A stretch of 64,000 nt of DNA from Camelus dromedarius. Lineage: Eukaryota. The translations under genes were made by a program, and so were the position numbers. This document shows positions 51,278 to 63,839 of this stretch, in pieces (within the stretch, counting starts at the first letter, position 1; each line of letters opens with the position of its first letter). The DNA is taken from the NCBI RefSeq assembly GCF_036321535.1, contig NC_087438.1, positions 95,294,001 through 95,358,000 on the forward strand, written 5' to 3'. The notes beneath the pieces were generated by a model. It did not search any database. It had not been told where the DNA came from and saw only the letters and a program-made list of their open reading frames with translations.

Positions 51278-51358
51278 GTGTGTGTGTGTGTATGTATACA
51301 TATATATACACATATATACATGAAATACATATATATACACACACACACATATATATAT
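51278..51358. repeat. Compound (TG)n-(TA)n-(CA)n microsatellite
   Basis: Seen directly; the TG and CA blocks are mutually complementary. Confidence 0.9.
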
Positions 51359-57167: not shown

Positions 57168-57876
57168 TGATGCTGAAACCCTGGCCTCTGTGCCCCAATA
57201 CCGATTGAAATCTGGAGACAGACTTTTGGGTGAAGTAGTAACGAATAGCTTTAGTTCTTTGCCAGGCAAAGAGAGTCACAGCAGGTTAATGCCTCAAGAC
57301 AGTGAGCCCCCTTGGGGAGGGCTGGTAGGGAGTTTTATAGCAAACGTCCAAGGGAGCAGTGCTCCTGATAAAAATCCGAGTATACACAGGCCTGCATTCT
57401 TTTTCTCCTGGCACAGTGGCATTGGCATCAAGGAAATCTGGTGACAAGGCCTCCTGTTCCTGAGGTTATCAGATCACATCCTCCTCCTCCATCAGGGTGG
57501 GGTCAGGTGTTTGTCCCCTGTTCTGGGAGTTCACAAACCATGTCTCTTCACATCCCTGTGCCTGGAGCAAAGGGTACTCAGGGAGGGGGTCTGGGGACTT
57601 GTGTTCCAAGGAAAAGGAAAATATATGCAGTATAAAATCAAGCTAGTGTGTGTGTTAGCATGAGGGAAGCCACTGTAGGTTACTACTGTGCAGTTACAAG
57701 TATCATGCAGTCATGAATTCCCCACTATGAATCTAATCTGTCCATTTGATGTTGTCTTTTAACATCTGAAAAACTCATGGGATACTAGTATCTGGGTACT
57801 TCAGAGAGGAATTAAAGCGAGGATATGGGGGAGGGGTGTGTCCCGGGAGGGCCCCATAGGGTCCTGCTCAGTTATA
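57168..57876 (-). mobile_element. ERV1-class solo LTR (709 bp) with 4-bp TSD
   Basis: 'tgatgctgaaacc...ctggagacagacttttgggtgaagtagtaacgaatagctttagttctttgccaggcaaag...gggagggccccatagggtcctgctcagttata'; GAAG at 57164-57167 and 57877-57880. Confidence 0.88.
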
Positions 57877-57889
57877 GAAGGAGAATGCA

Positions 57890-58532
57890 CAGTTTTATCA
57901 TTAGCGTATTCTGTATTTGCCAATTCTCCTGCTCGCTGAAATGTATCTGTAACCCCCAAATCAATACTTGGGGCACTTTCACTGATAGTCACAGACTTAC
58001 ACAAAGTGGCAAAAAAACTCGAGGTGCCCAACATGCATGTTCCCAGCTAAAGTGGAGTAGGGTGATTGTTGTTTCAGCTCTCAGGCTGTAAATGCATGTC
58101 CTTTTTCTGGTCTACTTAGTAGTGGCATGTTTTTGCATTTCTGTGCTTTCAGTTGGTGATTTCTCTGTTTCAAATAACCCACCAAGTGTAGTGCTGAAGT
58201 GCTGTTTAGTGTTCCTAAGCACAGGATGGCTTCAATGTGCCTTAGGGAGAAAATAAGTGTGTCAGATAAACCTCATACAGGCACAAGTCATTGTGCTGTT
58301 GGATGTGGGTTCAGCATTAAAGAATCAACAATGTATATTGAATAAGGTGTTTTAAAATAGAAACAAACATAAAAAAAGGGTATTTATGGATCAGTTGATG
58401 ACAATGTTGTGATCAGAGGCTGGCAGGAAGGTCACCCTGTGTTTCCCCAGGAGCTGTGGCTCAGTATTCACCACTTCATTGTTCTTGGTGACTTCATAGG
58501 ACATAACTACCAGGAAGAACAAGACTCAACTG
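57890..58532. mobile_element. TcMar-Tigger non-autonomous element (MER82-like), near full length
   Basis: Termini 'cagtt...' and '...caactg' followed by TA; internal 'tgtatttgccaattctcctgctcgctgaaatgtatctgtaacccccaaatcaatac...gtagtgctgaagtgctgtttagtgttcctaagcac'. Confidence 0.85.
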
Positions 58533-58789
58533 TAATTACTGTAGCAATAGCACCTGGCAGTGTCTACCCTGTCCCAGTCCCTCTATACTTCAGGGCTAGG
58601 AACCCGTACAGCTCTGCAGCATGGTTGCCGTGATCTACATGGCAAGGGTTGGGAAACTGAGGCTCAGAACTGTGGAGTAGAACTGAGGTCACTTATTAAA
58701 GAAATGCCAAGTGCTAGTCTGTCATAGACATTGCAGAATCAGAACCAACAGGGCATTACTTACTTTTGGGGGATGGGGTAAGAAAAAAG

Positions 58790-59340
58790 GGAGAGTTGTA
58801 AAGACCATCTCAATATGTCAAGTTCAGGACCAGGAAGGTGGTGGTGCCACGAGGAAGAAGAGCCAGCTAAGATTTTAGGTAGCAGAGCAAGACTGGATTT
58901 TAGCTCTAGATCTGGAAGTCACCCACAAAGACACGCTTATAGTCATGGGAGAGATTTGACACACTGTCCCCACCCCCCCAGGAGAAAGAGAATTCAAGAA
59001 AAAAATTTTTCATTCAAGGGAGTAGATGAAGAAGAAGGATGCCAAGAAAGAGAACAGAGATCCCAACCAGAAGTAGGAAAATAATAAAAGACTACAGGAC
59101 AATGGAAGCAAAAATGCATTCTCCAAAGAGGTAGAGAGGAGATAGCCTGTGGTGTGAGACACTCAGACGTCAAGCAGAACAAAGACTGAGAAAACGTCAC
59201 CACATTTGCAGATGGGCTGTCACTGGTGACATTTGGGAGAGAGGATTCTGTGATTGTGGGGATGGAGGACAGAGAAAGAAGGAGTGAGTAGGTCTGAGAA
59301 ATGGAGACTGCAGATGTGGATGGCTCTTCTCCCAGCTCAC
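58790..59340 (-). mobile_element. L2 (L2c-like) fragment
   Basis: Purine-rich 'gtcaagcagaacaaagactgagaaaacgtcacc...gtcactggtgacatttgggagag...gagaaatggagactgcagatgtgga'. Confidence 0.8.
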
Positions 59341-59364
59341 ATCTCTAGGGGGTGAGATGGAAGA

Positions 59365-59451
59365 TGCCTTCCCACATTTCCTGGACTCCATTTCCTTGTC
59401 TCCATGGTTACAGGAGACAAGGAAATGGAGTCCAGGAAATGTGGGAAGGCA
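59365..59451. repeat. Perfect 39-bp inverted repeat, 9-nt loop
   Basis: TGCCTTCCCACATTTCCTGGACTCCATTTCCTTGTCTCC (59365-59403) is the exact reverse complement of 59413-59451; loop ATGGTTACA. Confidence 0.97.
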
Positions 59452-60699
59452 AAAGAAAATGTCGTTCTGAAAACCCAGGAAGGGCTAAGAGGAAAGGAAC
59501 ATGCAGATTTGTCCTTTGGGAAGAGAAGGTGTTTCTGCTCCTTGAGACAATGTGTGGCTTGCATCTGCTGAGCCCTGGAGAGACACAGGAATGTAAAGTT
59601 TCCAAGCCAAGACTCAAACCAGGAACCATAGTCACCTGAAGACAGAGATGAGTAAACTGCAGGAAAGACGGAGATGCCTACCATGTTCAGATTTTCAGTC
59701 TCAGAGATGATGACTGGAGAATGTCTAGTCATTTGGGAAAATAAGCTTGTTGGAGAAATAGACTTCCTTTAAAGTAGCTAGAGTTATTTGGCTACTTCTA
59801 AAAAGTTTTGACGTAGAAATCTTGCTGAATCTGCATTTGCCATTAATAACAACTATTTAGGGGTTGACATTTTCAGGAAGACACCTTGCTTAAGTTCTTT
59901 ACAAATAAAACAGAAAGAAATCACTTCAGTCTCTCAAGTAGGTTAAACGTTTCCCATTCTCACTTGTCTGTTTTCCTTATTCATCAAGAAACCTGGTAAA
60001 CCTTTTATCTCCAGATGTTGCAGAGGCAAACTTCTGCCAGGCTTATGGGAACTTGTCACAAAACCCCAAATTAGCAAGACCTGACTGCCTGACGCCACAT
60101 GCCAGCTGGACCTGAGTGCCCTTAATTGCCCTGCCCGTGGGAATAGGAAAGTGAGCTCGGCGATTTTGCTATGTCTTGGTTAAGCCTTTTCAATGATAAA
60201 ATGCTTCCAGATATAGAATGTTCCCAACAGCCTGTTCCCTGGGAAATGCTGCGTAGAAGCTGATGGATAATAGCAGCTTGCTCAGCTGAGCCCAGCCATG
60301 AGAATTGAGATGTTAAAGTTTGATATGCTAGGGAAGCAATTCTCAGCCTGAGTCCAGCTCAGAGCTCTTACTGTCCCTGCCCCGCCGCTGGGCACGGAAG
60401 GAAATGGCGCACCATCACCTGATACCCTGTTCAGTGGCCTCCAGCCTGAGCTCTTGGTACCTGGCAGCCCTCTGGCTGTACCCTTCCCCAGGGCTTCTGC
60501 AGTAGGCCCGACCTGGAGTCCAGCCCCCTATGTCCCTCACCAGTGGTGCAGTTTTAGACCACTTACTAAGCATTTCTCAGTCTGCAGAATGGAAGCCTTG
60601 GGTCATTGTGAGATGCAGACAGGTGTTGGTGAAACAGTCCACAGTGGGCAAGATGCCTGACAGCGTGCAGGGCAGTGCTTACTGTTGTCATTCGGTACT

Positions 60700-61250
60700 A
60701 GTTGTTATTTTAGATGCTAAGGAAGTTAATATTTCAAATCTTTCTATTCTTTTCATCTCACATTCCAGTAACATGTGCTCATTGTGACAAGTCAAACAGT
60801 AAGAGGTGTGCCAAGAAAACCTCATTTTTCCCCACTCCTTTGCTTCCACCATGTTACACACACTTTCAGAAGTATCCATCGCTAAGTTTTGTGGGCATCC
60901 CTCGCACCTTTCTCTCTACTCACACTAACACATTCGTAAATATTAGGGATTTTTTTCCCCTAAGTATGTATATGTGTTTCTGTTGTGGGTTTTTTTTTTG
61001 GTGGGAGGGTTCACAAAAATGGGATCATACTGTCCTCAACTTTACTCTTTCTGCTTTAACAAATGTCTTTCTAGCTCAATATTCCAAACAAACTTATTCT
61101 TTGGAAGAGCCACATGCTACTCCCAGCAGCCTACTAATAATGTAATCCGTGCATAGTATGTGCTTCCATAATTGCTGCAACCAGCGTCCCATTGATGGAG
61201 AGTCAGGCTATTTATAGTTTTGTGTCTCTAGCATAAATATTGTCATTATT
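60700..61250 (-). mobile_element. Old L1ME 3' UTR remnant
   Basis: 'ggatcatactgtcctcaac', 'gtgcatagtat...ccataattgctgcaaccagcgtcccattgatggagagtcaggctattt'. Confidence 0.55.
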
Positions 61251-61349
61251 TTTTCCATCATAGGCATGAAACTGGGCCTCCTGTAATATCACAGGTTGGA
61301 TGGGAAAATCAGAATCCATAAATTAAGTCTCAGATTCTGCGTTCTTATT

Positions 61350-61470
61350 TCTTCCACTCTACCCTTATCTGCCCTCACTTCTCTCTCCGTCTCCCCTCCT
61401 CTCTCCCCACCTCTCTTCCCTCTCTCAAACCTCACCCTCCCTCTTCTCTCCAGACACTTCCTCCTCACAT
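61350..61470. repeat. CT-rich low-complexity tract
   Basis: Long, almost pure pyrimidine run on the + strand. Confidence 0.85.
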
Positions 61471-62404
61471 CCCTGATAAACAGGGAAACATGGGGCTCTT
61501 GCAGGTGTGTTTTCATTTCTGCATTTTATTTCATCTGGTCTTCAGGGAACCTGTAGTCATTTTTATGATAAAACCTTAGTTGTAAGAGGACTTTGTGATC
61601 TCTTAGCAAAGGTCTTATGTAAATGAATTACTAGGCTGTGGTCTACCTGCCCAGTGGGCACCCTGATGGCTTCGTTTTGTTACAAGGAAAGTCAGAAAGA
61701 TGAGATTCTCTGAAGCAGAGGAGAGCTCTTCACTCTGGAGAAGCTGTGTTGGTAATTTTTGACACTGTCTGCTACAAGCTGCATTTTTGGATCTGTGGAC
61801 TTAGATGCATAAACTGCTTCTGAAAATTTAGTTCATTCCCTGCTCCCCATATCCCCTGTCTCTGGCCCCGTGCAGAGACAGAGTTTATTTATTTATTTTT
61901 TTATTGAAGTATAGTCAGTTATAATGTGTCAATTTCTGGTACACAGCACAAAGTCCCAATCATGCATATACATACATATATTCACTTTCATATTCTTTTT
62001 CATTGACGTTATTACAGGATATTAAGTATAGTTCCCTGTGCTATACAGAAGAAACCTTTTTTTAAAATCTATTTTTAAATATAGTGGCTAACATCTGCAA
62101 ATCTCAAACTCCAAAATTTATCCCTTCCCACCCCATTTACCCCGATAACCATAAGATTGTTTGCTATTTCCAAGTCTGTGTCTGTTTTGTAGATGAGTTC
62201 TTTAGTGTCCTCTTTTTTCTTTTTTTTAGATTCAACATATGAGTGATCCCGTATGGTATTTTTCTTTCTCTTTCTGGCTTACTTCACTTAGAATGATAAT
62301 GTCTAGGTCCATCCATGTTGCTATAGGTGGCATTATTTTATTCTTTTTTGCTGAGTAGTATTCTGTTCTGTAAATATACCACAGCCTCTTTATCTAGTCA
62401 TCTG

Positions 62405-62653
62405 TCAATGGACTTTAGGTTGTTTCCATGTCTTGGCTATTGTGTATAGTGCTGCTGTGAACATTGGGATGCATCTGTTTGAGTTAAGGTTCCCTGTGGA
62501 TATATGCTCAGGAGTGGGATTGATGGACCATATGGTAAGTCTATTTTTAGGTTTTTGAGGAATCTCCATACAGTTTTCCATAATGGCTGCACCAAACTGC
62601 ATTCCCACCAGCAGTGTAGGAGGGTTCCCTTTTTTCCACGCCCTCTCCAGCAT
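62405..62653 (-). pseudogene. L1 ORF2 C-terminal remnant (frameshifted)
   Basis: '[12 protein letters not shown]...[10 protein letters not shown]' and 'CIPMFTAALYTIAKTWKQPK' match the L1 ORF2p C-terminal region. Confidence 0.92.
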
Positions 62654-62660
62654 TTATCAT

Positions 62661-62803
62661 NNNNNNNNNNNNNNNNNNNNNNNNNNNNNNNNNNNNNNNN
62701 NNNNNNNNNNNNNNNNNNNNNNNNNNNNNNNNNNNNNNNNNNNNNNNNNNNNNNNNNNNNNNNNNNNNNNNNNNNNNNNNNNNNNNNNNNNNNNNNNNNN
62801 NNN
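62661..62803. other. N block (143 nt) inside L1
   Basis: Run of N. Confidence 0.99.
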
Positions 62804-63008
62804 TGCTTGTTTAGTTCTTATGCCCATTTTTGGATTGGGTTGTTTGTTTTCTTGTTGTTGTTGTTGTTGTTATTAAGTTATTGAGCTGTTTATATATTCT
62901 GGAAATTAAGCCTTTGTCACATCAGTTGCAAATATTTTCTCCCATTCCATAGGTTGTCATTTTGTTTTGCTTATGGTTTCCTTTACTATGCAAAAGTTTA
63001 ATTAGGTC

Positions 63009-63203
63009 TCATTTGTTTATTTTTGCTCTTATTTCTATTGCTTGGGTAGACAGCCCTAGGAGAACATTGCTAAGATTTATGTCAGAGACTGTTTTGCCTA
63101 TGTTCTCTTCTAGAAGTTTTATAGTATCTTGTCTTATGTTTAAGACTTTAAGCCATTTTGAGCTTATTTTTGTGTATGGTGTGAGGGAGTGTTCTAGCTT
63201 CAT
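63009..63203 (-). pseudogene. L1 ORF2 remnant
   Basis: '[38 protein letters not shown]' is typical L1 ORF2p sequence. Confidence 0.95.
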
Positions 63204-63274
63204 TGATTTACATGTTGCTGTCCAGTTTTCCCAACACCACTTGTTGAAGAGACTGTCCTTTCTCTATTGTATAT

Positions 63275-63425
63275 NNNNNNNNNNNNNNNNNNNNNNNNNN
63301 NNNNNNNNNNNNNNNNNNNNNNNNNNNNNNNNNNNNNNNNNNNNNNNNNNNNNNNNNNNNNNNNNNNNNNNNNNNNNNNNNNNNNNNNNNNNNNNNNNNN
63401 NNNNNNNNNNNNNNNNNNNNNNNNN
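63275..63425. other. N block (151 nt) inside L1
   Basis: Run of N. Confidence 0.99.
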
Positions 63426-63839
63426 GAGGGTTATTCCTCCAGCTTTGTTATTTTTCTTCAGTATTGATGAAACTGAGCTTATTTTGAAGCCAGAGACCCA
63501 TAGCTTTGGCCCATCTTGATTCAATGGTGGTGCCCACAGGTGACCAACATTAGACACATAGAGGCACCAGCCAGAGCTGGCAAAGAGGGATGGGGCCAGT
63601 CTCTGGTTTGGGGCAAATTCTAGTTTCTAGAGCAGGGAAAGACCAGCCCAGACAAGCCCATATGTCTCTCCTTGGCAGAGAGAAAATTAAATTCAGCCTA
63701 ATCCACTATATTCCATTCAGCCTATATAGCATTTTGGTCATTTATAGATTAGAAGTCTTGCCCAGGTATAGAGTCAAATTTACATTTTGTCATTATTTAG
63801 GAACCATTCCCAATCCAGAGCTTTCCGTCCAGGTTTTTT

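Follow-up and report, generated by a model that had tools for sequence, protein, structure and literature searches.

[quoted passage not shown] Template switches have a mean length of 11.6 bp and reach 97-180 bp per individual human genome (10.1101/2021.11.26.470150), and those of primates have produced more than 6,000 miRNA-like hairpins, with stems of 30-55 bases, from unstructured sequence (PMC10710096). The published 1-4-3-2 hairpins (PMC5453318, PMC8794818, PMC10710096; hsa-mir-4713, mmu-mir-3086) come from primates and mouse; they are reverse-complement copies made in one step, with a perfect stem of 30-55 bases, a central loop, an outgroup free of the copy and colinear flanks. The hairpin described here, in a 64-kb stretch of camel DNA (the window), resembles them in the one-step copy, the stem, the loop and the outgroup, and may do so in the colinear flanks, whereas it is camelid, its 39 nt place it in the upper tail of the known lengths, and any miRNA processing would be hypothetical. 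In the Ripley-type correction of quasi-palindromes, a bacterial model, the nascent strand copies the opposite arm and leaves a perfect repeat, as would be the case here, but it requires a pre-existing near-perfect inverted repeat, and the cetacean orthologue of the locus has none (z = +0.9). Snap-back repair by polymerase theta likewise gives a reverse-complement insert from the flank with 1-3 nt of junctional microhomology; such delins are usually shorter than 25 bp (median 5) and carry a deletion (PMC5068794), whereas the camel copy measures 39-40 nt with no evident deletion.

The inverted-repeat search on the window showed a perfect inverted repeat with a left arm at 59365-59403 and a right arm at 59413-59451, each of 39 nt and 100% complementary, separated by a 9-nt spacer, ATGGTTACA, at 59404-59412. 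Position 59364, the first base of the interval given in an earlier note on this DNA, is an unpaired A that precedes the left arm. Folding as RNA gave -89.8 kcal/mol (z = -13.6) on the plus strand and -86.5 kcal/mol (z = -14.0) on the minus strand, and folding of the hairpin as DNA gave -55.3 kcal/mol (z = -13.9). The predicted fold has two extra pairs within the spacer (T59405-A59412 and G59406-C59411), a bulged A59404 and a tip of 4 nt. Complementarity stops sharply at the outer ends, where purine faces purine across the two flanks; both are purine runs, with GAAGA on one side and AAAAG on the other. The trinucleotide ATG at the left junction (59364-59366) is repeated at 59404-59406 and is a candidate 2-3-nt microhomology. 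Thus the mismatch-free arms with a 9-nt loop and the ATG at both junctions, as the earlier note had described them, were all found in the sequence. Its picture of a pyrimidine-rich left arm in a purine-rich context held on average, with a purine fraction of 0.60-0.64 for flanks of 100-1000 nt on either side (left arm 0.21, right arm 0.79), and did not hold for the nearest 60 nt on the left (0.45-0.50).

The hairpin was single in its surroundings. With up to three mismatches tolerated, the arm sequence was present at only two places in the 64-kb window, and dinucleotide shuffles (n = 100) gave 0 matches to it. Inverted repeats of at least 20 nt with a spacing of at most 200 nt were limited, in the whole window, to the hairpin and one microsatellite, a (TG)n/(TA)n/(CA)n tract at 51279-51349 that forms a 25-nt quasi-palindrome with 88% complementarity. 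The composition of the window was vertebrate-like (GC 0.405, CpG observed/expected 0.18), and both arms had a CpG count of zero. By local BLAST with 59814-59849 masked, the old flanking DNA, in which the earlier note saw a putative ancient L2, had no paralogue elsewhere in the window. No occurrence of the arm sequences was found in the literature searched, and the loop together with the right arm, used as an exact pattern, had no match among the JGI metagenome contigs scanned. At 59298-59319, a candidate for a second, diverged copy of the right arm in direct orientation was rejected as not significant (74 of 500 shuffles).

The presence of the hairpin in independent reads was assessed with the diagnostic stretch 59335-59425, in which 52 of the 61 possible 31-mers cross one of the two edges of the left arm, to the left flank or to the spacer. 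Fifteen public runs held 6/6 of the 31-mers sampled from this stretch and four more held 5/6; the runs with junction 31-mers carried two organism labels and came from at least six studies. The Logan contig L016 (SRR36380800), found by exact look-up of an ORF of the window, was 100% identical to 57265-59394 and ran from the left flank into the left arm, where it ended after 30 nt. A second contig, L009 (SRR33129674), was reached via the ORF at 60714-61145 and the predicted protein P0007; its first base is 59422, exactly k-1 = 30 nt inside the right arm, and it so showed the same break signature as L016. In a k = 31 de Bruijn graph, the internal 31-mers of one arm are also the nodes of the other, so contigs must break k-1 = 30 nt inside the arms. 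Such a break signature, k-1 bases inside each arm, could be used for detecting short perfect palindromes without spanning reads. Across 58900-59900, all 14 of the top DNA runs held exactly 0.97 of 106 sampled words; a short loop piece of the palindrome dropped from the contigs in deep runs could be one cause of this share.

Orthologous contigs were reached via a spurious minus-strand ORF of 131 aa that crosses the hairpin and led to the predicted proteins P0001-P0005. Contig L001 aligned to 58531-61890 with 16.4% mismatches over 3.4 kb, and the eight contigs L001-L008, which form three closely related haplotype groups, represent the orthologous locus. These groups are cetaceans, as L007 belongs to ERR13362600, the PacBio HiFi run generated for the genome of the Atlantic white-sided dolphin (PMC13157609). 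An orthologue of the right arm was present in all of the cetacean contigs, with five differences from the camel (59440, 59441, 59444, 59445 and 59451), while none of the eight contigs had a match to the left arm. When the left arm was removed from the camel sequence, the bases that border it aligned to neighbouring bases in the cetaceans, and the spacer aligned loosely. Flank identity between camel and cetaceans was 84-87%, and two more indels of 11-12 nt between them lie less than 15 nt from the junctions, the outgroup being distant. The orthologous 136 nt of the dolphin gave -26.5 kcal/mol with z = +0.9 and are thus unfolded, against z = -13.6 in the camel.

By this comparison, the right arm at 59413-59451 is ancestral and served as template, the spacer is probably ancestral too, and the left arm at 59365-59403 is the derived 39-nt inverted copy, because the cetaceans carry the right arm without the left arm in a sequence that is unfolded. 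The orthologues thus bear out the earlier note, which had read the left arm as an inverted insertion templated by the right arm. All 5/5 of the right-arm differences between camel and cetaceans are mirrored in the left arm, and purine composition gave a naive likelihood ratio of 10^3-10^4 in favour of the right arm as native. The camel and cetacean lineages split about 60 My ago, and the probability that a hairpin stays perfect over 60 My was about 1e-3 to 3e-5. The polarity stands on one outgroup lineage (the cetaceans, a single clade) together with this implausible perfection, and on these sequences the hairpin is specific to the camelid side of the camel/cetacean split.

Several observations were made on the reading frames and the cetacean contigs of this region. 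Two stop-free ORFs cross the hairpin, at 59337-59732 on the minus strand (131 aa) and at 59352-59639 on the plus strand (95 aa). A Pfam search of the nearby ORFs, including both of these, showed no family; a homologue search with the ORF piece 59340-59564 gave none, and exact look-ups of three left-flank ORFs gave no matches. The orthologous spurious ORF is called a "protein" of 153-213 aa on cetacean contigs in a public protein collection, and such false proteins offer a handy path to orthologous non-coding DNA. One cetacean group (L001/L002 around 2900; about 59322-59349 in the window) lacks 28 nt between two ATCTGCAG direct repeats, which the camel and the other cetaceans retain; this is a small short-repeat deletion.

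It is likely that a single template switch over a short range, a fold-back error of DNA synthesis on the camelid lineage, made the hairpin. Synthesis over a purine-rich and previously unstructured stretch would have left its own template, copied 39 nt of the neighbouring 59413-59451 as reverse complement, and rejoined the first template at a distance of 9 nt from the block just copied, with 2-3 nt of microhomology (TG/ATG) as a probable aid. The switch points would be 1 at 59364, 2 to 3 from 59451 to 59413, and 4 at 59404, with the ancestral order 1-4-3-2. Viewed on the minus strand, the nascent strand would copy the right arm and the spacer, snap back, copy 39 nt of itself, and re-anneal to the original template via the newly made CA/CAT; a switch between strands would give the identical product. 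That product would be a perfect 39-bp palindrome with a 9-nt spacer, later inherited as single-copy and most likely neutral DNA. In the exact-insertion reading, the ancestral allele would be ...GATGGAAGATGGTTACAGGAGAC..., without 59364-59403. We infer a replication rather than a repair setting, the exact switch points and neutrality from this arrangement. The ATG repeat at the junctions may have been used as microhomology; in the mirror model, its counterpart is a CA repeat of 2 nt. The immediate ancestor is represented only by an outgroup of 16% divergence, in which a scar-free insertion of 40 nt is not directly visible.

Two features expected of a template switch were found at the locus. The left arm is the exact reverse complement of nearby sequence (39/39 nt, with the template 9 nt off), and an outgroup with the template but without the inverted copy was found in three cetacean haplotype groups. 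Judged as the primate hairpins were (PMC10710096), the locus has no parental hairpin (in a distant outgroup), a 39-bp stem within 30-55 and a central loop. The 39-nt copy far exceeds the template-switch mean of 11.6 bp and is inside the published range.

Three other origins were weighed against the template switch. Perfect palindromes are known to be generated by library preparation and by long-read artefacts, and a fold-back chimera of assembly or sequencing would have the same appearance. Against this, 15 runs from at least six studies hold the junction 31-mers, and contigs of two further runs (L016 and L009) break at the k-1 positions predicted by the palindrome. Since the junction 31-mers occur in independent runs and L016 ends where it does, an assembly chimera is very unlikely and ruled out for practical purposes, and the chance left to an artefact of any such kind is negligible. 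It is just as improbable that the hairpin is old, whether as a conserved element or as a MITE with terminal inverted repeats, and that cetaceans have since lost it. Shape alone speaks for an old element; the right arm occupies the "empty" cetacean site, which means that the arms arrived separately, the flanks (GAAGA and AAAAG) show no target-site duplication, the window has no further copy, and 60 My of perfection has a probability of about 1e-3 or less. A MITE or other DNA transposon was rejected on the same counts (right arm in the outgroup, no flank duplication, single-copy in the window).

Polymerase-theta end joining of a double-strand break, in which a 3' end snaps back, 39 nt are copied and the ends are joined through 2-3 nt of microhomology, is an unlikely origin. 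The insert is a reverse complement templated by the immediate flank, with TG/ATG repeats at both junctions, and polymerase theta primes on about 2 bp and yields reverse-complement inserts by snap-back synthesis (PMC5068794). Its templated inserts in C. elegans, however, accompany deletions and are short, mostly below 25 bp and with a 5-bp median, and only a minor class of them is snap-back (PMC5068794); the insert of 39-40 nt is longer than these, and the alignment of camel and cetaceans requires no junction deletion, the outgroup being distant. Repair by polymerase theta is thus a less likely setting than a template switch in replication.

For the age of the hairpin, a locus rate of 1.5e-9 per site per year, calibrated on the cetacean comparison with the split set at about 60 My ago, was used alongside an alternative of 2.2e-9. 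Contig L009 had 1.9% mismatches to the window over 2.5 kb, which corresponds to about 4-6 My at these two rates. Its start at 59422 means that the last 30-mer of the arm has two continuations, the right flank and the reverse-complemented left flank, and this contig end points to the hairpin being carried also by the approximately 2%-diverged relative. The hairpin therefore probably predates the split from that relative, unless it was exchanged by hybridisation. Zero mismatches over 78 CpG-free sites gave a 95% upper bound of about 17-26 My, and the age is probably at least roughly 4-6 My and under about 17-26 My. The word "recent" in the earlier note is apt in that the hairpin is younger than the surrounding DNA, which is alignable with cetaceans and thus old; it is not fresh or private, as the break signature of L009 implies millions of years. 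Arms that are still perfect after about 5 My have a chance probability of 0.42-0.56, so their perfection is expected by chance and is no evidence of selection. In the same SRR331296xx study, contigs L010, L011, L013 and L009 had identities of 97.0%, 97.4%, 99.2% and 97.3%, respectively, to the window at 59691-61915, and L010 and L011 encode a 143-aa ORF identical to that of the window, a pattern suggestive of two classes of haplotype that have diverged, be it as two species, in hybrids or through introgression.

Whether the hairpin has a role as RNA was weighed on the same locus. A functional or emerging small-RNA locus, giving a lineage-specific miRNA or an endo-siRNA/shRNA from a through-running transcript, is very unlikely. 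The 39-bp stem lies within the 30-55-base miRNA-like range (PMC10710096), and the arms have probably been perfect since before the split from the 2%-diverged relative; such perfection after about 5 My is, as given above, what chance would produce. RNA-seq contigs of one study ("reproductive system metagenome") held 0.76-0.79 of the words of a 1-kb stretch and 0.83-1.00 of the hairpin words (X30 1.00, X15 0.83), with neither strand nor level to them, but they may stem from carried-over DNA or from read-through in introns or between genes. The stem, at 39-41 bp, is slightly longer than the preferred 35 bp, and the loop of 9 nt (4 nt with the extra pairs) is shorter than the preferred length of at least 10 nt (PMC10710096). 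No gene, CpG island or known RNA was found in the window.

In a search of Rfam 15, the two strands of the hairpin matched 57 miRNA families from plants and animals, unrelated to one another, with 27-61 bits, all under the gathering score. The best scores were those of MIR6426 (RF03872), with 60.7 against a gathering score of 96, and mir-4716 (RF04240), with 60.6 against 76. Both families form an almost perfect hairpin of about 84 nt, its 5' arm rich in pyrimidines and its 3' arm in purines, as in the camel hairpin. The likeness is nevertheless sub-threshold, is found on both strands and consists mostly of compensated pairs, and 55 other unrelated families match too; the matches run almost wholly via compensated pairs, as any perfect hairpin would give. 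In 1-59800, no Rfam family reached its gathering score and no tRNAs were found. Bona fide miRNAs make up 18 of the more than 6,000 primate template-switch hairpins (PMC10710096), and it is this yield, taken as prior together with the RNA-seq signal, that sets the very low chance given to a small-RNA role. A small-RNA gene of the camel lineage caught early, born by template switch, carried on a reproductive-tract transcript and processed by Drosha/Dicer or by Dicer alone, would accordingly be a long shot; if it were true, transcripts from either strand would give the same small RNAs, as the arms read alike on both DNA strands. On present evidence, the hairpin is most probably neutral and has no function.

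A larger difference from the cetaceans was observed further along the window. A block of 1.58 kb at 61891-63468 is missing from the cetacean contigs, and L001 joins 61890 straight to 63469. The block has a T-rich start (a reversed A tail), near-identical GAG[T/C]TTATTT on both sides, L1-like sequence and two masked N runs, and has the look of a minus-strand L1 insertion, 5'-truncated and specific to the lineage. It is common to the approximately 2%-diverged relative, as L009 extends 25 nt into it. Beside two of the four N runs of about 140-156 nt, the sequences at 62600-62660 and 63215-63274 resemble the 3' sequence of L1 ORF2, so those masked stretches lie in repeats and not in exons; the N-run flanks examined showed no splice signals.

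The hairpin at 59365-59451 is real and, in the window, single-copy, a clear but unremarkable instance of a type of mutation already known. With outgroup polarity and read-level support behind it, it offers a well-documented case beyond primates and rodents in which one template switch would have turned unstructured DNA into a perfect 39-bp stem. It adds a further data point to the published view that template switches keep supplying raw hairpins, with a small share of them going on to be miRNAs.
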